DNA of 63,008 bases, counting the filler, from Hyphochytrium catenoides (Eukaryota > Protista > Hyphochytriomycota), in the NCBI GenBank assembly GCA_900088475.1. It is 9 parts of 9 records of this genome, joined end to end, with 100 filler letters (N's around TTAATTAATTAA, not from the genome) between each part and the next. Parts side by side here need not be neighbours in the genome. Positions count along the whole stretch, not along the records: positions 44,986 to 49,300 come from FLMG01003571.1; 8 more parts are not named here. One strand, given 5' to 3'. This document shows positions 1,098 to 49,300 of the stretch, piece by piece. Position 1 is the stretch's first letter. Each line of letters opens with the position of its first letter. The notes beneath the pieces are model-generated. The model saw only the letters and a list, made by a program, of their open reading frames with translations, searched no databases and was not told the origin of the DNA. A program made the position numbers and the translations under genes.

Positions 1098-2214
1098 GAG
1101 CAGAGCAAAACGAGAAGGATTGACTCACGCCAGAGTATATTGAGGAGGACTGACGTTAATTTATTAAAGCCAGCAGAGTTTCTATAGCCTGCATACATTT
1201 CAAAAAGCAGTGTGCATGCATTCAACCTCATGGATGGTCTATTCACCTCACAAGATCTAATACTACTCACGATGCTAAGAGAATGCGCGGCTCGTCCAGG
1301 GTCGAGAACCTGGATTGTGAAGTCGCCCAGATCATCTTCATAAAGGTCGAGAGCTGCTGTTGCTACTTAGAAAGCTTAGAGCGGAGTTTGTGGAAGGAAA
1401 CGTCATGTGCCTCTACTAACTGCCGTCTCAGTCCTGGCAGCACCTGCTTATGACTGTCTGAGAAAGCTTCCTAATGGCCGGTCTTCATCGTTAGTACTTA
1501 TAGGCCTATTCTCTTTCCACTGCTGGACTAGTCATCTAGGCCTGTCAGCTGCTGACTAGTCATCTCGGACTGTACACTTGCCACCATTGATGAGATCGAT
1601 GCGCCTGCTGGTGCTGCTGTCCCCCTTTTTACCTTGACTGTCTTAGGAATATCGCTGGCAGGCCGTCTTGAGTCATCAGCAATGAACGACGCACGTGCCT
1701 TACTATTATCTCCCTGTGACAATCGTCTATCATTTGCTGAACAACAATACATCTACGAAGCTGAGACATATCACTTCGGTGTAATTACATTCAGGCCCGA
1801 AAGTAACACTTCACTCCATTTCAGCTAAAGTCCTAGCTGGCTTCTGCTAATCAGTTACGAGAATAGTAACGGTGACATGAGGGGAGACGCATCACCGACC
1901 TTGATGGCCTGAAGGTTCGTAGATCAGAATCCACTCCAGACAAGCCGCCGCGAGTGAAGGATCGTGATGACAAGCCGATGATCGTCTTGACAGTCATCCA
2001 TAATCTCAGCTGTCCTGTTAGCAGCGCTGCAACACATCCGTCTGCCCAGTGCCCAGTGACCTTGCTGAAGACTGCTGTCGCCGCTAAACTGTGCTCTTTC
2101 TCTGTGAGAAGCTCTAGTCTTCCTTCACAGCTCGTTAGAGGCCGACGAAGGTGAAGGAGTTAGGCTTAGTTACGGTAGTTGGTCCAGCGCACCCATTGGT
2201 CGGCGGTAACCAGG

Positions 2215-5200
2215 ATGATGGCTTTGGCCACCAGGGCGAGAGCCTTGTATAGACCCAAAAGATCACAGCCAGGCTTCTCAGGTCACCTCTTTCTGAGATG
2301 CTGGTCTTCACAAGCGCCAGGAGTAAGACCATCACAGGTTGGTCAATGAAGATCGTCAGATCAACAAGTTGAACAAATCAACAAGTTGGACACACCCTTG
2401 CTCATTCGCGAAATATTTCTACTCCGTTCAGCTCCGTCTCGGACAAGCAGTGCAAATATTTGGCGCAAATACTGATGTCGGAAAAACTCTGATATCAGCT
2501 GGGATGTGTCGTGCAGCTCTGCGGCGACAGATGCGTGTCCGATATGTCAAGCCGCTGCAGACTGGTGTGGCTGATATTATGGAAGGCAGTGCTCCGCTCG
2601 ATGAGTCCTTTGTTACGCGGCACTCTAACCCTTTCAGTACCGAACCAGGCCAATTCACTGCCTCCACGCTATTTAGGTCTGAACTCCTTCGATATTGTGC
2701 TTTACGCCCCTTCTTATGTTCACCATTGCTCTCAACCCTACCTGTATCGCTGTCTCGATAGCTGGAGGGCAGCCGTGTCTCCTCATCTGGCCTCGGAACT
2801 CGAGAAGCATACAGTGCCAGACGAGGTTGTGCTGGCGAAGGTTGAAGCGGAAATAAACCAGTTTCTGTCTCATGAGAAGGAGGGTGCGCAGAACCGATTA
2901 TTCCTTCTGGAGACCGCTGGCGGTGTGTGTTCGCCAACTTCGGCGGCAACCCTGCAGGTCAGCAGTGAAAGAAAGTCGGGCTTTCCGGATGGTTAACTTA
3001 GACCTGTCTCCCTACCTCGCCTGCTTACAGTCTTCGTTTGTTGCAAGCCTGACTCAAAGGTTGTAACCTTCGTGAGCCTCATTCCATCCTACTTTAGGAG
3101 CTTTTGTATCTTAGCCTTTATATTGCCGGCTCCTGCAGGTAGACGCTTATCGGCCCCTGAGACTTCCTGTTTGCTTTGTTGGAGATGGAAGATTAGGAGG
3201 CATTTCCTCCACAGTTAGCGGGCTGGACAGCTTGACCCTTCGCGGCTATGATGTAGCTGTTCTGCCGGTCATTGAGACAGCGTGAGTGCCACTATGTCCA
3301 CCTCCTGCGACTGTAGAGTCCTCAAGATTCTGTTACCTCTACTACTGCTATCAGTGGGTATAGTTCTTTCTTCCTCTCCTCGGAGCTGGTCTTTCGCTCT
3401 GTGGTAAGCCATTCTCAGAGACTGGCTCGATGTCTAATAGAAAGCTTGGCAATGCGGAGTATCTGCGTGATTATTTGGCAAGGGAAGGCAGAGCAATACC
3501 AGTAGTACCTCTGAGTGGTTATCCGCCCGATCATCTGCCCTTGGACGGGTGGTACGAGGAGAATGAGGCGGCCTTTGATATCATCCTTGAGCATATCATG
3601 GAGTTTACAGAGGTCCGGTACTCTTCAGTGACACTTGCACCTATTGCATAAGTCAGGCTCTCCCTATGGCGAGCAAAGCTCCAAAATCCTCACCCATTCG
3701 TTTCGCTTTGGCATGACTGGAAGATGTTCTTCCACTAACACTTCCTCGCCTCCCACGTCCGAATCACTAGAAACGAGATCGGCGACTGAATGACCTGGGA
3801 CACATTGCCAAGGAAAACCTTTGGTGGCCCTTCACCCAGCACAAGACAACGAGAGATGTGCAAGTTATGGATTCAGCATTTGGAGACTACTTCCATTTTC
3901 ATAACAGAGATGCGCAGGTATCAGGGCACTTTCGTTCGCCTAAACTGTCACTCTACGCCGTTGATAGATTGGGGGTTTCCATGGTTGCCTGCACTCCTGC
4001 TAACATACTGCTTGACGTGCGTCGACAATGTTCTAGGCTCTTGAGCGGAGTTTCGATGGCTGTGCAAGTTGGTGGACACAGGGTGTTGGGCACGGCAACC
4101 CGCGATTGGCCGCTACTGCAGCCTATGCTGCTGGCCGGTATGGACATGTCATGTTCCCTGGTATAGCTCACGAGCCAGGTAGGCGAATACTTACTTCGTC
4201 CAGCCCTCAATCCCGATTACGTCACATATCTTTTCTAGCAAGTAATCGCTTTCGCTAGTCGTTTCAAGTTGCTTCTACATGCTTCCTATGTCGGGTCGAA
4301 ATACCTTGCGTCACCACGGTCTCCGTGTGGCTCCTCCTGGTTGATATTCTTCGCTCCCGCCATCTTTTGAGACGCGCCGTTAGCTGCCGAGGATCTTCTC
4401 AAAGATCAGCCTTTATCGCACCTTTTCTTGACCCAGTTGGTAATTTCATGGATCTGGCCTAACGTGTAGTTTACTCCTGGTCGCATAACCGTCTCCCTCT
4501 GTTGTTCCTTAGCGGTGGCTCTGTCTGAGAAGCTCCTGGAAACGTTGGGACGGGGCTGGGCCTCCCGAGTATTCTTCTCCGACGACGGGTCAACTGCAGT
4601 AGAGGTTGCCATAAAGATGGCACTGCACAAATATCTCAAGGTAACATCAGAACTTGTCCCTGCTCTTTCTATGGCTTTTGCGCTCTCTGCATTGTCCCTT
4701 TACTTCAATGACCTTCCTCTCCTATCATATTTTCCCTTTCTCTGCTTTGCTCCCTTCTCTTTAATAACCTTCCTTTCCCTATCACAATAACCATAGTCCT
4801 TACTGCAGGATCGTAGTCTGCCCTTGAAAACTCCACTGGTAGTCTTAGCACAAGAAGGGTGCTACCATGGAGATACCCTAGGCGTAATGGATGTTGCCGT
4901 TCCCAGTGTGTTTAACGAGAACCAGCACCCCTGGTAGTTAAATGATCCATCTTGCCTGACCAGTCTGTCTCCGGTTTTGCCAAAACTGCTTCCTATGACA
5001 ATGGCCAATTCCACAGGTACGAGCCAAAGGGGGTTTTCCTTGCGCCTCCGCGGGTCAGAATAAAAGAAGGAAGGACTTTTATTGATCTACCACCGGACAT
5101 CGCGAAATTCGCTGAGGAGATCGGGTTAGACGAAAGAGTAGAGGTAAGGAGGCGCATTTAGGAGGCTGAAAATTGGTAGGACGCCTCCCGCAGACGTTAT

Positions 5201-7052: not shown

Positions 7053-7449
7053 GCGTGGTGAAGCCACAAGTCTCTTCTGAAAAGTGTGGAGGCCGTCCAG
7101 AGCGGAAGGATAGGAGTAGCGGCCCCGTTTTTATAAAAGAGCAGACAGAAAGAAGAATAAATAATGTTATTATAATCAGCGTTAGATTTAGAACGGCTAG
7201 GGAACATGAGCTCTGTTCAGTGCGTGCTCTTTCTTCGCCTGCCTGGCTTTTTGCTCTTAAATGGTGGCGATCTGCCCAACTGGCCACAACTCCCCTTTCT
7301 CTGCCTTGGCCTTGGAGCAGGAGAAACTTTTAATGCTACCTCACTTGTCTCGGCATGGCTCCAGACATATACAGTTCCCTAGAATCAGAGGACGCAGGAA
7401 AAGCCATCATCGTGAGACAGTCCATTGAGGAAGCAATCGCACAGATATC

Positions 7450-10400
7450 TCAAACAGACGGACACATTGGTACATAAGGGAGTTGAAAGGGGCTGCAGAA
7501 GGCTGAGGGTTGCAGTAGGGAGGTCTTGTAAGGCTTGATTCCTACAAAACTTTTGATGATCCTTTCACTTACATTGCTCGATACCACTAAATACTTCGCC
7601 CCTAGCACTAAGGCGGATATATTAGCCCAGAGCGCCATTGACAAAAGAGGAACACCAGTCGGGATATGAGAGACTGAAAGCACCGGTTTGCGACAGCTTT
7701 CAGAGATCACGACGACTGCTGAAAGATGCCCGCTAGCGAGCGTAGTGGAGTGAGAGACACCTAGAGCTACGCAGGATGTTAGAGATGCATGATAAGCGGG
7801 TGAACTTTGAGCAGAAGCAGGGCCCCAGACTTGTGTAGATCTTAGTACAGTCTATGGTAAAGCGCAGAGACGACCAAAAAATGGAGAGAACGCAGAGCTG
7901 CTGGGGTTGGTCGATCGGAGGCTGATCCAGTGGCCATACCGTTCACAAATTCAGTGCTTTCCTGGTCAGAGGCTGCTGGTCCAAAGAGATTTCGCAGTTG
8001 CTCATGCAGTGTGGGAGAAAGGAATAAGTTGAAGGCACTAAGAATTTGCTCTATATCTTCGACAGTTACCACTTCGCAGCTCTCGAGCACTATTTCCAGG
8101 GTCAAAGCGTCCAATATTCCAATGAGAGGTACTGAGTCTCCTCCCTCTTCTCTCTTCCCAATAACAAGGACCTTCTCTCTCTCACCCCCTGCACCAATGT
8201 CCTCCAAAAAGACAATGCAGACGACCTTGGCCGTGGAGCCAGCGAAAGGCCGAACCATCTTCGCGCTTTTCATGTCCTCCAGCTGGATGGAGTGCACAAA
8301 GCCGTTGGCTGTGCCGCAAACCGCTACAGAGTCCGCTACATCGCCGCACACAATACCTCCCTTGATTACCTTCAAGCCCAATGGCCGGCCTAAGGGCAGC
8401 AGCAACGAGGCAAGAGAAGACATGTGCAGGATGGGCGTGCGGAGAGGGGGCAACAAGAACCCAAAGCAGAGTGGCAAGAGAGACAGAGGATTCATGAAGA
8501 GTACGTACACAGAGGCAACAAGCAAGAAAAGTTAGTCATCAACAGCCGCTCTCGTGTTGTTGAGTTCAAGGTCAGCCCTTCTGATGCTTTTCCTGAATCT
8601 TCTCGTTCCCAGATTCCTTCTACCTTCCCTCTCCCACTCCCCCAACACCCTTACCGGAAGGGATATCCCAACAGCGAAGTAAATTGGGACAGATCGTGTA
8701 GAGAGTGTTCTTTTCTACTAGAACTGTGTGGATTGTCCGTGGATGGGCGTGATGAGAGGCCCAGGAGTGAGGCTCGTTCTTGGGCTTTAAGCAAGTTAAG
8801 CCCTGAGCTATTTTGGAGCTCGCACCGCCCCAATAGTCTAAAACATTCATAAGCCGATAGGACCACTTCTCAGTACTATAGAGAGAGCGGAGAAGCGAAT
8901 AGGAAGCCAGGACTGAAGATGAATTTCTCATTCCTTTGTAAGCCTCATCACCACCAAGTGCTCTCGGAATGTCGTCTGTTTTGACCCCATACAGACGTGC
9001 GAGCGCACTCTCCCAGTGGACTCTCGAATGTTCCCCAAGAATAATGTCCCTCCAAGAAGAACAAACCAGTCCGCAGCTGATGACATCATGAAGAGATGGA
9101 AGGAAGGAGGTGACTTCCCATAGTAGCGAGTGCGACATATGAGAAAGGTAGTCAGGGGTCGTCGTAAGGTGCACCGTAGGATCCAGATCCAGTGCCTGTA
9201 GCTTTCTACAGTGATCCTCACATCCTGGCAAAGCAAAGCAAGCATGCGCTGTTAGCCAGCGTGTGTAGGAGAGGTCATGATAGCTACTGCAAATGTCCAA
9301 AGACCCATGAGAAGGGAGCACGACGAAAGAGCTTACTTTGTACAAAGGTTCGCCAGTTGTCAGGCGGGAAGTCTCTATCCCACGTCACTATTCCTTCTGA
9401 ACTTGGATCCTTATAATATATAACAAAAGCTGTGCGCTGCAGAGCCTGCGCCTCCTCCACTGACGGCTCCTCGACAAGATTAGACATGGCCACCTCATAG
9501 AGGCCCGGCATCCAGGAGCCGCTGATGTCAATGGCCGGAAAGGAGCAAAGCCAAGGACGACAAGATCGAGATGTAAGCTGAAAGTAAAGAGCCTACAAGT
9601 AGCTCTAAGGACATTCCAAGGCGCGTGGAAAAAGGAGACAAAAGAGACACGCGATGCACAAAGCGGGGCGATGGCATTATATCGCGAAAGGCTCTNNNNN
9701 NNNNNNNNNNNNNNNNNNNNNNNNNNNNNNNNNNNNNNNNNNNNNNNNNNNNNNNNNNCTTCTGAGCAAGGCACACCTCATGAGAGTACTTGCACTTGAG
9801 GCCCCAAGGGCAAGAGCCTGTGCGCAGATACCGCCGGCACAGCTTATCCTTTAAAAGACCAGCAAACGGCAAGTGTACCCCGAGCGACCGCAGGATTTCA
9901 AGGGAAAAGAGCAACACCGAGAAGTGAGGAATGCTTTCTCCCAATCATCTGGTCACTGCAGTCCGTGCAGCTCTCTCACCTTCTTCTCCCAGCGCCTATC
10001 GTCCTCCTCCTCTCGCTCTATGAGCACTCGAAACTTATCGAGGGCCAATAGGCCCGATAGCTCATCGTCGTGATAGGCCCATCGAAGGCGTCTAAGAATC
10101 TCTCTGAAGGAGAGCGCTTTCCGGACGGAGTCTCCCATTATACATGCTCAGTTTAGCCACCTTGTGCTCGTTCGGTACCTATCTATTGCTTCTTCTTTAT
10201 CTCTTTCGCTCTCTTTCTGGACGCTTGTTCCTCCCACAGCCACACCGCCGGACCGAGAAGATGTCCCTACAGGCACTAATAACCGAAGTGCGGCCTCCTT
10301 ACAAGTGGCGGTGCCCGATGACTCTTTGAATCTGCGGGCAACAGCTGGAGCTGGAGCTGATGAAAGACGTGAGCCTGGCTCTGGGATGGCGTGGAGGCTG

Positions 10401-10537
10401 TGAGGAGCAAGCAAGCTGCTGCGAGCTGTGAGAGCTTGGCTTGAGTTGAAAGCTGAAGCAACGGAGGAAGAAGTGCTGACGATGATGCTTCTCTTTGAAT
10501 CTCCCACTCGTACATAAAACGAAGATATCTCTTCCAA
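7450..10537 (-). CDS. CCCH zinc-finger + F-box protein with possible beta-propeller-like C-terminus (multi-exon, ends approximate)
   Basis: CCCH exon DKLCRRYLRTGSCPWGLKCKYSHE (~9780-9850). F-box-like LSHMSHSLLWEVTSFLPSLHDVISCGLVCSSWRDII (~9040-9150). Downstream exons contain LLRCWDIPSG and VAVCGTANGFVHSI. GT-AG junctions join the upstream exons in frame. Internal N-gap at 9696-9758. Confidence 0.6.
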
Positions 10538-12064
10538 ACTCTTTTTCGACCAGGAACCCTGGTATACTATGGCTAGATTGAATTTACCGTTTGCTCTGTC
10601 ACACGCCCTTTCTCGCTCTGTCTCACGCCTGTCCCCTGATCATGTCACGGCACACATAATGGGTGATGGTATCCCTTAGATATGCCGCCTCTGGGATGGG
10701 TTTGATTCTATCTCCCCACAGAATGGTTAGAAAGCCCTATAAAAGAATCAGAAGCTCCCTGATAATATTCCACCATAGCGAACTGATGGCTGGTCAGATT
10801 TCTGTTCCTCATTCACCGTATTCCGGACTTCGACTCCCTACTTTGGACTGATAAAAGTAGTGAGAGTCCGCTTGACGAACCAAGAGAGAAACATCTGGGA
10901 GTTTTCCCTCTTGAAGAGTCAACAGAGCGACAGCGATAGATGCAGACAGAATCTTCAGATATCTACGGGCAGACCAGGGGTCGCAGGGTTAGAGACCGGA
11001 GTCGATGGCGAGGGAGGAGACGAAGAACACGCAATCGCATTGAAGAGCATAGGTTACATAAGAGGGGAATCGGGGTCTCTTTAGCTCAGCTCACATCCTG
11101 AGGGATTGCTTGTGTGCCCGACTATTGATATTCGCTACCGCCTTAGCTTGCTGAGGGATTTGTGAGACTGTGAGGTCTCTTCTAATGCTTCTAACAGAGC
11201 AAGTTTGCCGAGCACTTTGAATACATGTCGTGAGTCAGAGAGAACATCAGCAGGAGGGTCTTCTTAATAGCTCACCATCTTCTCTTTTGGAACCTTGGAG
11301 TGCTTTCCTTACGCTGGCTGCGGCTGAAAAGGCAGAGTAGAGCAAGGAAATCGTGACCATTCTGAGTGGCTTAAAGAAAAAGGATAATTCTACCTGCTGC
11401 GGATGAGGCGGTTTCTTCGTCGTTGTGATCGTCCTCTGAGGAGCTAAATGAATCAATGTCACTCACGCTTGCTTTCCTCCTGTTTGTTTTATGTCGATGG
11501 CGAGCTCTCTTTCCCTCGGACTCTTTGCACTGCTCTAACTGCGAGAGTAACTGCGAGTCCAGCTGCCTTTTGCAGGGGCCTCTAAGTGCCGCGCTATGGG
11601 ACTGCAGCCCTGCGACCGCTAGTTGTACGCTATCGGGGTCCTATCCCCAAAGTAGAAAATGGTTTAGAAAGGGGCTGTAAGGTGAAAAGTCACCGCTGCA
11701 GATAACGAACGGATGCAGACTTAGGAAGAGAAGAAGGGTATAACGATTGAGAGTCAGCAAGGGAAAGGACAAAAGTAACCTGATAGGGGAGAAATGGGCT
11801 CACAGAGGTCGATGAAAGCCAAGAAACAGCAAGGACAGAGAATGCTTAAACCGGCCGCGGTGAATTTATCGATAGTTTCGTGACTACCTGGCAAAAGTCA
11901 CAGGAGCGGCAGGAGCTGCTAGGCCGCTGCGATGGCAAGAGGAACGTGTCAGTACTATACTCGGGCCAAACAGATGGGTGATCATTCACAAGACCAAATG
12001 CACTCAACATGGGACCGAGAACAACTTTTACCGTCTCTCCAAAATATTTGAGGAGATAGGCCCG

Positions 12065-44985: not shown

Positions 44986-45909
44986 GTGAGGAGACCACAT
45001 GGAACACGTCGGTTCAAGAAAGGAGGAGCTCAGATAGACAGGGCGCAAGTAGAAACGAGGATCACCGACTTTGGCTGTGGAACCGTAGCCAGCGAAGGCC
45101 GCTGGTCTAAGAGTAAACGTGGAGTCATCAGCATGATCGTTTGAAATAATCCTCATCTTGCTGGCTTTCTTCTCAACTGTACCTGCTTCTCTCTCAGCAT
45201 TATAAATAAGTGATGACAAAGAAAGATCTTCTTCGCAGCAGGTAGACCACCACCATCTCTGCTGCCGGTTTTCATTCTTTTTGTCTGTCAGAGATTGGTA
45301 TACTCCTCTGTCCAGTGCTCACTCTTCATACAGCTTGCTCGCCACCACCCTATTTCTTAGTCGACTACTCTCCTCCTGGTGCTTTCAAGTGTAGCAGTCA
45401 TTTTACGAAGCTGATGCTGAATCTTTTTTCTTAGGACTGTCTCAGATCGGTCCCTCTCTTTTGGGGTTTGTCTACAATTAGTCGTTCGAGAAGAAGAAAG
45501 AAGGAACCCCTTTTGGTGATTGATAGAAATAGGAGTTGAAACGACAGGTTGGTTCTTCACGCGGATGATGCTGAACTGTGTCGTCTCTTAGTGACATTCG
45601 TTCCTTCCTTACGCCTTGTGTCGTTCAACAACCAGCCTTTGGGCTCCTGCGATTTCGCTGATGCCTTGAACAGCTGACGATAACAAAGTTACTGGCCTGT
45701 GAGTTTTGCCGCTAGCAGAAAGACTATGGCGCCCTCCTGGCCCAAGCAACCTCCTGTCATCACCTGCTTCTTGCCTGGACTGCTATAGGCGCTACATGTA
45801 GCTACCATTAAACGCCATCAATGGTGCGCCGCTTATCACTTCTTCAAAGCTTGTGTGGAGACCACTTTATTATAGCTTATGGGAAAAACCCTCGTCTGCG
45901 GAGATTCAA

Positions 45910-48750
45910 TCAGATATCTGTTCGGCCTGAAGCTCTGATAAGGCCGGCGAGGCTTGTGTTGAAATCATTCGCTTCCAGTAAGGATTCAAGGTTCAGATGA
46001 AAGCGGTAACGCCAGTAGTGGTCAGGGGTCTTTTGGGGATCGTTAATCTGCTCCGTAGCAGGATCTTGTCTCCTTAGTTGTGCATCCATCCCCACAAGAT
46101 CCTCCAGCGGAAATATCGAGAGCATACATGGTGCGTATAGGTGTTGAGCGATAATTTCCTTGACAACATGCGGCTCACAAGTCTTGGGGGCGCATCCATG
46201 GTGGCCAAGAATAGACGTATAAAACTGCTGGCTTCTTTCTCTGTCTTGTTCCCACCATCCCCTGAGGGTAGACATGTCGTGTGATGATGTGGAAGCCACG
46301 CATAAGTAAGGGGTGTCTGCAGGGTGCCAGAACTCGGCCTTAGGGTCCGCAGGCATTCTTTGGATAGCCAATCGAAGAATGTTTAGGTATTCCAGGACGT
46401 GGGGCACGCATTCTGGGACCATACCAAGGTCTTCAGCGCACACCAACATCTCAGTTGCTTGCTTGATGACGGGAAGCTTGGTCAGGGCCTTGTTTTTCCA
46501 AAGTCCCTCCTGGTGTTTGTAGAAGTAGTCAATATACAAGTCCCATAGCCTGGCTTTGACGTTGTCATCCAGAGCCTCAAAAGACTTAGTCTTCTCAAGA
46601 CTGTGCCGAAAGTGGAATTCTCGCCCACCACTACCTTCTACCTCAAATAAGAGCACCTGGCAAATGGCAAAGAAGTCAGATCAATCAAGTAATGATGAGA
46701 AAAGGCTGAACCTTACCTCCGCGATAAGCGAGAATAGCCCTATACGCAGGCGCTCTCTGAAGGACTTGTCTTCCATGGACATGTCATCTTTGACTGCAAG
46801 AACTTCCTTTACTTGCGCTTGGGTCATCACCTCTGGCTTCAGCTCATAGATTCCAGGCTTAGTTTCCACCAAAAAAGTCTTTTTGGCGTACTCTGCTAGA
46901 TCACCGAAGCGTTCTGCCAGGAAGTAATCCCTAATGTATGGTTTGCAATAACGATGATAGTCGAAGTCTAGTCCTCGTTGATTGAACTCATCGATGTGGA
47001 TGGGGATGGCAGGGTTGAAAAAGCCCATAATGCCCTGGACTTGAGTAGTAGGAACCTGCCAGATACGGAAAAAGCCAAGAACATGATCTATTCTGTAGGC
47101 AGAAAAGTACTCCGCCATCTTTAGAAGTCGACTCCGCCGCCATCGATACCCATCTCTGGCCATTTCCTCCCAGTTGTACGTTGGCAGGTTCCAGTTTTGC
47201 CCGCTCTGGTCAAAAGCATCTGGAGGGGCACCGGCTACCATGTTCATGTTAAAAAGGTCTGGGTACATCCAAGCGTCAACGGAGTGACGGTAAATACCAG
47301 TAGGGATATCCCCTTTCAGCACAATGCCATTCTCCTTTGCGTATCTGCTGGCTTCCAGAAGCTGTTTGTGCAGGTGAAACTGAATGAAATAGTGAACGGC
47401 GATATCATGGTAATGGGCAGTGCTTGGATCAGCCAGGTCTCTCAGTTCCTCGTGCGACACGTTGCTGAACTTTCCCCATTCCTGGAAATCAGCTGTTCGG
47501 TATAGATCCCTGAAATATGAGAAGACTGCATATGGAAGTAACCACTCCTCGTTATCCTTGTAGAACTGACGATACTCCGAGTTCTCCAGGAAAGATTCCT
47601 TTGTCTGCTCATAGATGAGCTTAAGGAAGCGGCTTTTGAGCTTGTGAACGCCTTCGTAGTCGACACGTTGCATATCATTTAACCTCTGGCCACACTGCTC
47701 AATAAGCTTCTGCGTTACTTCCGCTTGCAGTGGGCCAAGTGCTTGGATGTTCATATACATCGGATGGAGCGCATAGACACTGATACTAGCATACGGGTAG
47801 GAGTCTTTCCAGGTATGCGTTGCGACGGTATCGTTGATAGGCAAGATTTGCACCACCTTCAAACCTACTTTACTGGCCCAGTCTACAAGAAGTTTGATAT
47901 CCAAAAAGTCTCCACATCCCAATGAGCTGGCTGTCCGAAGGGAAAAGACAGGGATAGCTACTCCAGCTCCTCGCCATGGCTGAGAAAAGCGGAATTGGTC
48001 ATCATTGATGATCGTCAGCACAGGACGCTTGGTCTGCTTTGTCCCATGATCCTTCGAGTTCTCTCCAGGAGAATTCAAACACATGGGCATACTTCGGTCA
48101 GGGCCCGTCTCCCACTCAACTTTGCCAGTAGCCATCTCCATCAGACCATACTTGTAGGTAATGCCTTCGCTGACTTTACTTGAGCTGAGCTCAACCTCGC
48201 CTTGCCAAAAGGGATGGCTCTTATTCTGTAAGGTGATTACCTTAGATGGACTCCAACAACCAAGCTCCGATATGCTGCCGCCTAGCACAAGCTTATGGGT
48301 TCGTCTAATGTGAGGACAAGGAAGTTGAAACCTGATGACCCTACCCCTAGGTTGACGAACCTGGGAAACGTCTGGCCTATCTTTGTTAGTAGGCTTGAAG
48401 AGTGCGTCAGTGAAGAAGGACGAGAAGAGGACATCCTCGGTAGCCTTGGGCGCTCGCCACCAATCAACCAGGTTCACCACTCCGTACTCGGATATGACGC
48501 GGGAGAAGATTCTCGTCTGCCCACCCTCGCACTGGTGGTTGGCAGAGTCTTCATATTTGATGGCGTACTTATACGTGAACTCCGCATCTGCCGGCAGCTC
48601 AATGCTTGAGGTCCACACATCTGGATAGGAAAAGCTTAAATCAATCGCCTCTTACCAGTCCCAGCTACCAAGCGTGGGATGAGAGCCACAGACTGCGATC
48701 CGTTGGCCCCATCGCGTACCGTACGTGATTTTGAAGTTAACAGTTACCAT
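45910..48750 (-). CDS. CBM20-CBM20-GH77 4-alpha-glucanotransferase (DPE2/MalQ-type); in-frame TAA at codon 33, possible pseudogene
   Basis: Two CBM20-like repeats, WRGAGVAIPVFSLR, DSYPY, GAPPDAF, catalytic RIDHVLGFFRIW / AEDLG / SSHD, and HYWRYR. One GT-AG intron (~46658-46716). TAA at 48654-48652. Confidence 0.93.
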
Positions 48751-49300
48751 CGTTGAAGCTGCGAGGCGAGAAGGTAGGGCACTTCTCAATGATTGTTGTT
48801 GTCGATACTAAGTCTTCTTGGGCTCGCTAAGTCTTCTCGTGCTCTCCTCATAGAAAGTTTGTCAGTGAAGGGTGAGACCGGCATCGGCACCACAAAGATC
48901 CCTGTGGCAACTGCCGCAACTGCACAGTGGTCACACCCGCTTGCCATAAGCATACAAACTGAAGCAAATACTGCATCGCTCTTGAAGAGCGGAAGAAGTA
49001 CGGAAGGAGTAACAGCCATAAGCAGCTGATGACCGCGAATGAGGACTACCCTTGCAGGGCCTCAAGGAGTACAAATGTGAGGGCTACATAATACCAGCAA
49101 GCAAATTTGTCGTGGTGGAGCTGCACACCTACACTGCTTTCCATCCGGACGACGAGAAATGTCATACGGCTAACCTTCAATCTTCCTCAGCATATACCAC
49201 CTGTCAACATCCCACGCTTCCCGGAGAGAGTGAACCCGTCTAACAACAACATCTTCAAGCCAACCAAGCAAACGGTGAGGTTGACAGCGAGATACAAGAT

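Follow-up and report, generated by a model that had tools for sequence, protein, structure and literature searches.

Part of a 63,008-nucleotide (nt) stretch of Hyphochytrium catenoides DNA (assembly GCA_900088475.1; the window, filler included) was examined, namely positions 44986-49300 (FLMG01003571.1), to which all analyses were confined. It carries a gene on the minus strand (48750..45910) which can with good confidence be read as a eukaryotic nuclear gene for a DPE2-like 4-alpha-glucanotransferase (CAZy GH77, EC 2.4.1.25) that would have passed from Bacteroidota to a eukaryote and gained an intron later. Together with ichthyosporean, Hyaloraphidium and environmental sequences, this gene makes up a eukaryotic clade that is nested within the DPE2-like radiation of Bacteroidota. 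No description of such a clade within that radiation was found in the literature searched. In addition, the gene has an in-frame TAA at codon 33, which could point to a variant genetic code in the host and can be checked cheaply.

The gene starts at ATG 48750-48748 and ends with a terminal TGA at 45912-45910, an exact match to the limits (45910-48750) given in an original prediction made from the sequence. The first in-frame stop upstream of the ATG is 21 codons away, and no other ATG intervenes. Translated from ATG to TGA, the frame has 947 codons and two internal stops, TAA (48654-48652) and TGA (46683-46681); removal of the intron gives a 926-codon protein. Exon 1 (46717..48750; this and all other features described here are on the minus strand) has 678 codons including the TAA at codon 33, as judged from translation and from alignment to homologues from residue 1. 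Exon 2 (45910..46656; 248 codons plus TGA) encodes the C-terminal part of GH77. Searches, profile scans and trees were all made with each exon on its own.

The intron (46657..46716) is 60 nt long, of spliceosomal type and in phase 0 (GTAAGG...CTGAC...CAG), with CTGAC 19 nt ahead of the 3' end and the in-frame TGA (46683-46681) inside it. Its 20 codons are absent in every aligned homologue, and excision restores the conserved junction ...GLFSLIAE|VLLFEVEG.... Since the gene has a phase-0 spliceosomal-type intron, it lies in a eukaryotic genome, which supports the proposal in the original prediction that it resides in a eukaryotic nucleus. The 'single clear spliceosomal intron' described there is borne out by this GT..AG intron (46716..46657), although as an account of the whole frame it is incomplete, as the TAA at codon 33 is also in frame. 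The intron site is not shared with the homologues on two environmental contigs described below, Ga0498938_0004594 and the one from ERR12387328.

As many Bacteroidota are among the top-scoring database matches, the contig might be taken for bacterial (Bacteroidota) contamination, but this is scarcely credible. The stop-bearing 60-nt GT..AG insertion breaks a conserved block, the flanks of about 920 and 550 nt are without recognisable genes and the gene lies, in trees, inside a clade of intron-bearing eukaryotic genes. Furthermore, an exact 39-mer of the gene had no match in 185,579 bacterial and archaeal genomes (GTDB). Neither the uninterrupted open reading frame (ORF) nor the bacterial gene neighbourhood that would mark a Bacteroidota gene was found.

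Pfam profiles match CBM_20 twice and Glyco_hydro_77, in agreement with the CBM20x2-GH77 plan of the original prediction. CBM20 module 1 (48505..48747) was matched by PF00686 on the pieces either side of the TAA (E = 2.7e-8 and 9.3e-5), and CBM20 module 2 (48082..48336) was matched by the same family at profile positions 4-86 of 97 (E = 1.2e-12). The N-terminal part of GH77 (47029..47955) matches PF02446 positions 1-298 (E = 1.9e-92) and aligns to amylomaltases in PDB, while the C-terminal part, within exon 2 (45910..46656), matches positions 300-460 (E = 3.6e-39). NCBIfam NF011081 also matches both GH77 halves. These halves are split by a DPE2-type insertion of about 142 amino acids (aa) (46543..47028), which runs from the end of exon 1 to the start of exon 2 with the intron inside it; across it the profile position jumps from 298 to 300 in Pfam and from 333 to 331 in NF011081. 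Two N-terminal CBM20 modules and an insert of about 150 aa in GH77 are the defining features of DPE2-like enzymes (Arias et al. 2012, PMC3429525).

All three catalytic motifs (Asp/Glu/Asp) are intact and align with those of solved GH77 enzymes (DPE1 and MalQ structures) and of all homologues. They are RIDH, with the nucleophile Asp at 47086-47088, and, both in exon 2, AEDLG, with the acid/base Glu at 46432-46434, and SSHD, with the third catalytic Asp at 46276-46278. In Thermus amylomaltase the catalytic residues are D293, E340 and D395, with neighbours R291, H294, D341 and H394 (PMC8465469). The segment LPINDTVATHTWKDSYPYASIS (motif NDTVATHTWKDSYPY) is located at 47791-47838, inside the N-terminal part of GH77. 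In fetched sequences, the corresponding motif is NDTSVHGMWWDSYPY in Cannabis DPE2 and NDTVA(T/K/E)HxWxDSYPY in Bacteroidota, and the contrast between Bacteroidetes and plant DPE2 motifs on which the original prediction drew from recall is thus correct.

A word search with exon 1 retrieved thousands of proteins that share the 2xCBM20-GH77 architecture, are about 913 aa long and have 45-50% identity. Most of these are from Bacteroidota (Flammeovirgaceae, Persicobacter, Bacteroidales and others), with matches also in Sphaeroforma arctica and Hyaloraphidium curvatum. The best match to exon 2 (61%) is the last exon of a multi-intron homologue on a Joint Genome Institute (JGI) contig, and Abeoforma whisleri matches at 55%. 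A large representative search was used to look for closer eukaryotic relatives, whose absence a claim of transfer presupposes, and to supply an outgroup. Among its 954 cluster representatives at E < 1e-30, the closest are 46-52% identical. Named clusters include Cannabis DPE2, Cyanophora, Astrephomene, Trichomonas, an alga from MMETSP/Tara, Pelomyxa, several Bacteroidota and one Margulisiibacteriota metagenome-assembled genome (MAG). Identity to DPE2 from Cannabis, Cyanophora, Astrephomene and Trichomonas is 36-41%, compared with 45-50% to Bacteroidota. Nothing closer was detected: a metagenome scan gave no relative above 53% identity, and in word searches full-length proteins reached at most 50% and exon 2 at most 61%.

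Two environmental contigs carry homologues with introns. The eukaryote-like JGI contig (Ga0498938_0004594, positions 7360-11053, from metagenome 3300048597) encodes a multi-intron 2xCBM20-GH77 homologue, whose neighbours are genes for threonine synthase, glutamine synthetase and thymidylate kinase. A Logan contig from ERR12387328 (positions 1233-4420) encodes an intron-bearing homologue which is about 60% identical, ends with TGA and has Ala at the TAA column. The ERR12387328 homologue is closest to that of the JGI contig in the exon 2 tree and to Hyaloraphidium in exon 1 trees.

In exon 1 trees, the gene forms one clade with the proteins of Sphaeroforma, Hyaloraphidium and ERR12387328, with a Shimodaira-Hasegawa-like approximate likelihood ratio test (SH-aLRT) value of 99 and support of 98 both in FastTree (163 rows) and under LG+C20 with posterior mean site frequencies (PMSF). 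This clade is sister to a pair of Flammeovirgaceae sequences (94; 97 in FastTree; 95 with LG+C20 PMSF). Clade and pair fall together within a set made up mostly of Bacteroidota (95 and 97), apart from canonical eukaryotic DPE2, which is set off by a branch with 97% support in the mixture-model tree. When the tree is rooted on canonical DPE2, the eukaryotic clade is nested 12 nodes deep. Exon 2 alone gave the same placement, with six eukaryotic rows (98) next to a Flammeovirgaceae group (88), and the agreement between the trees of the two exons rules out a chimeric gene. Within the eukaryotic clade the window gene branches deepest, with no more than 63% identity to any member.

A vertically inherited canonical eukaryotic DPE2, as in plants, glaucophytes, Amoebozoa and parabasalids, would require no bacterial transfer and would have the architecture seen here (2xCBM20 plus split GH77). 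It would also be in keeping with the published placement of Bacteroidetes genes inside the eukaryotic family (Arias et al. 2012, PMC3429525). This explanation is nevertheless very improbable. Forcing the gene to group with the Cannabis, Astrephomene, Cyanophora, Trichomonas and MMETSP sequences cost 236 log-likelihood units and was rejected by the approximately unbiased (AU) test (p = 7.9e-8). The lower identity to canonical DPE2 than to Bacteroidota and the Bacteroidota-type motif also argue against it. Moreover, eukaryotic lineages share introns between the CBM20 modules (Arias et al. 2012), but here codons 34 to 678, which cover both modules and their linker, form an uninterrupted frame without any such intron.

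The term 'Bacteroidetes-like' in the original prediction is therefore supported, given the position next to Flammeovirgaceae, the rejected grouping with canonical DPE2 and the motif type; in the GH77 phylogeny that it proposed as a check, the gene does not group with canonical eukaryotic DPE2. Its suggestion of horizontal gain is the best reading of a gene nested in a mostly Bacteroidota radiation but has to be modified, as the gene is part of a eukaryotic clade rather than a lone transfer into the host.

Some points weigh against the main reading. The window gene's branch (0.6-0.8) is longer than any other in its clade, and many deep nodes of the trees are weakly supported. The mixture-model trees were quick PMSF trees, and the AU test was run under LG+F+G4 with a rapid constrained search. 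Which way the transfer went depends on the rooting, and the Bacteroidetes genes have been proposed to come from eukaryotes (Arias et al. 2012, PMC3429525). Furthermore, if the TAA at codon 33 is a real base and is read by the standard code, the product is truncated after 32 residues. Should the direction proposed by Arias et al. hold, the eukaryotic clade would be a return transfer. The clade thus complicates the published eukaryote-to-Bacteroidetes account (Arias et al. 2012), to which a return transfer is a likely addition. The likeliest history is that a eukaryote acquired the gene from Bacteroidota and that the intron came later.

Two further sequences have unexpected positions in the family. 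DPE2 of Pelomyxa schiedti falls among Bacteroidota-type sequences on a long branch. The Margulisiibacteriota MAG sequence groups with canonical eukaryotic DPE2 in FastTree, and in the mixture-model tree its place is basal to the mostly Bacteroidota set. These placements hint at further transfers in the family, in both directions.

The in-frame TAA (48652..48654, codon 33) lies inside CBM20 module 1, in the context LGSWDW-TAA-EAIDLSF. CBM_20 profile positions 2-31 match before the TAA and 36-85 after it, without an indel, which places the TAA at profile position 33. The one alignment made across this codon was of the straight translation, with X in place of the stop. The column is filled in all 159 full-length homologues, most often by E (39), Q (29), D (21) or N (13). 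The 32 codons upstream of the TAA, which give the CBM_20 match with E = 2.7e-8, are 52% identical to the ERR12387328 homologue.

Removal of the TAA by splicing was considered, as G|GTAAGAG resembles a 5' splice site, but there is no workable acceptor. Use of the CAG at 48622-48621 would give a 35-nt intron, shift the frame and create a TGA at the junction. In-frame introns of 21 nt (48655-48635), 51 nt (48655-48605) or 48 nt (from the GT at 48668) would delete 7 to 17 residues present in all 159 homologues; depending on the option, these include a conserved Ala (139/159), a Met/Leu column (158/159), a Trp or the LGxW motif. A downstream codon as the normal start was also rejected: the next in-frame ATG comes only after both CBM20 modules, and conservation already extends over the first 32 codons. 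Because the profile runs through without an indel, the column is never gapped and no intron option fits, the TAA stands in the place of a residue and is not part of an intron. Either it is translated as sense, or one base of a CAA or GAA has changed, through a nonsense mutation or an error in sequencing.

It is possible, though tentative, that the host nuclear code reads TAA (and perhaps TAG) as sense and uses TGA as stop. The gene would then be intact, with Gln or Glu at codon 33. This would explain a TAA at CBM_20 position 33 with no indel and no acceptable intron to remove it, in a column where every homologue has a residue and E or Q is commonest, downstream of 32 codons that are still CBM_20-like. 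The gene's own terminator is TGA. On the other hand, TAA occurs once in 927 codons compared with 42 glutamine codons (21 CAA and 21 CAG), a ratio which excludes heavy users of such codes, like most ciliates. CAA-to-TAA and GAA-to-TAA are each a single-base error or mutation, the relatives on the JGI and ERR12387328 contigs have no stop codon at the column and no tRNA gene was found in positions 44986-49300. A variant code is expected to show in-frame TAA or TAG in many genes, together with a suppressor tRNA (anticodon UUA or CUA) and an altered eRF1; this piece has a single gene, with one TAA at a conserved and never-gapped column.

Known reassignments of TAA/TAG occur in ciliates, some ulvophytes, diplomonads, oxymonads, Amoeboaphelidium and Blastocrithidia (PMC5304391), and none was found for stramenopiles in the literature searched, which included that source. 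If the TAA is sense and the host is a stramenopile, stramenopiles would have a variant nuclear code, for which that literature gives no example in the group. The fuller proposition, that a host with a lightly used reassignment of TAA (or TAA/TAG) and TGA as stop carries an intact member of a clade that regained a DPE2-like gene from Bacteroidota, is more doubtful.

Alternatively, the TAA may be a true nonsense mutation under the standard code, which would make the gene a null allele or a pseudogene of very recent origin. Its place only 32 codons into the gene, with the next in-frame ATG beyond both CBM20 modules, is consistent with loss of function. However, this is unlikely, as the rest of the 926 codons are intact and free of frameshifts, the catalytic and binding motifs are all present, the intron boundaries are clean and both exons have the same tree position.

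By homology, the product is predicted to have 4-alpha-glucanotransferase activity. From the mechanism of plant DPE2 and Escherichia coli MalQ, it would act as a retaining transglycosylase, with the Asp of RIDH as nucleophile, the Glu of EDLG as acid/base and the Asp of HD as stabiliser of the transition state. A glucosyl unit would be taken from maltose or short maltodextrins and passed to an alpha-glucan, either glycogen or a soluble glucan, that the CBM20 pair binds as acceptor, and glucose would be released. Such a role parallels that of DPE2 in plants and MalQ in E. coli (PMC3429525; PMC3789958). In heterotrophic protists, DPE2 is usually paired with beta-amylase in the breakdown of glycogen or amylopectin (bioRxiv 10.64898/2026.09.25.754361).

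The protein begins directly at the first CBM20 strand, as in bacterial homologues, and its alignment shows no N-terminal extension. Since there is neither a signal nor a transit extension, the enzyme probably acts in the cytosol. Use on prey starch by a secreted enzyme, which could have followed from the suggestion in the original prediction that prey or host starch is consumed, is unlikely for a protein that starts at CBM20 without a signal sequence.

The named relatives in the clade are all opisthokonts, namely the ichthyosporeans Sphaeroforma and Abeoforma and the fungus Hyaloraphidium. Opisthokonts, as far as is known, store glycogen. The alpha-glucan pathway around this enzyme may therefore be ordinary. 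The lineage proposed in the original prediction, a stramenopile that probably stores beta-glucan, finds no support in positions 44986-49300. There is an appreciable chance, though short of even, that the contig belongs not to such a host but to some other eukaryote present in the sample, such as a glycogen-storing opisthokont protist or a chytrid-like fungus, in which case the metabolic paradox is gone. The piece is only 4.3 kb long and has no host marker that was found, which is compatible with such an origin, as is the opisthokont identity of every named clade member. However, the gene is the deepest branch and at most 63% identical to any member, so that the contig is not from a sampled close relative, and transfer between eukaryotes or an older origin could also account for its position. 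The presence of an alpha-glucan enzyme in a beta-glucan storer is a paradox that matters only if host identity is confirmed.

In the flanks (44986-45909, 924 nt, and 48751-49300, 550 nt), Pfam, Rfam, tRNA and Atlas searches gave no match and no clue to the host. An AATAAA (45866..45871) lies about 40 nt past the stop codon and is, from its sequence, a possible polyadenylation signal, which would fit a eukaryotic transcript. At the left edge there is an ORF of at least 78 codons (44986-45219, minus strand), which starts with an ATG at 45219, is open off the edge and lies about 690 nt downstream of the GH77 stop. Pfam and Atlas searches with this ORF gave no match; it may be the first exon of a next gene, or noise.

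Comparison with known systems places the gene closest to five eukaryotic relatives, S. arctica SARC_05934, the H. curvatum 4-alpha-glucanotransferase, A. whisleri Awhi_evm1s13319 and the genes of the two environmental contigs. These have the same two CBM20 modules and split GH77 in about 912-918 aa, and share with the window gene a one-residue gap after FRF as well as RIWQ, CAEDLG, LCVAS and APCM. Identity to them is 48-63%, and none has a stop at the TAA column. The genes of the JGI and ERR12387328 contigs have several introns, none of which is at the site in the window gene, and the window gene has none at theirs.

The DPE2-like proteins of Bacteroidota (a Flammeovirgaceae MAG, Persicobacter diffluens, many Bacteroidales and Cytophagales) have 45-50% full-length identity, the same length and plan, and NDTVAxHxWxDSYPY. 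Their genes are uninterrupted, in contrast to the window gene, which has an intron, gene-free eukaryote-like flanks and clade-specific substitutions.

Cytosolic DPE2 of plants and Archaeplastida (Cannabis sativa; Arabidopsis AT2G40840, as described in PMC3429525 and PMC3789958) has the same domain plan and catalytic motifs, and presumably the same reaction, maltose + glucan -> glucose + glucan(n+1). Plant DPE2 differs in forming a separate clade with about 40% identity, in its greater length (about 950-1070 aa) and in its NDT...WWDSYPY motif. In addition, introns between the CBM20 modules are conserved in eukaryotic DPE2 and missing from the window gene.

MalQ and DPE1 (Thermus 1CWY, Aquifex 1TZ7, potato 1X1N and E. 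coli 4S3P) have the same GH77 fold signature and catalytic Asp/Glu/Asp but neither the CBM20 pair nor the insert, and only their catalytic domain aligns (E = 1e-32 to 1e-18). Maltose cannot serve as donor for plant DPE1 but can for DPE2-type enzymes (bioRxiv 10.64898/2026.09.25.754361). The enzyme type is thus well known, and the window gene is a divergent member of it, with at most 63% identity to anything in the databases searched.

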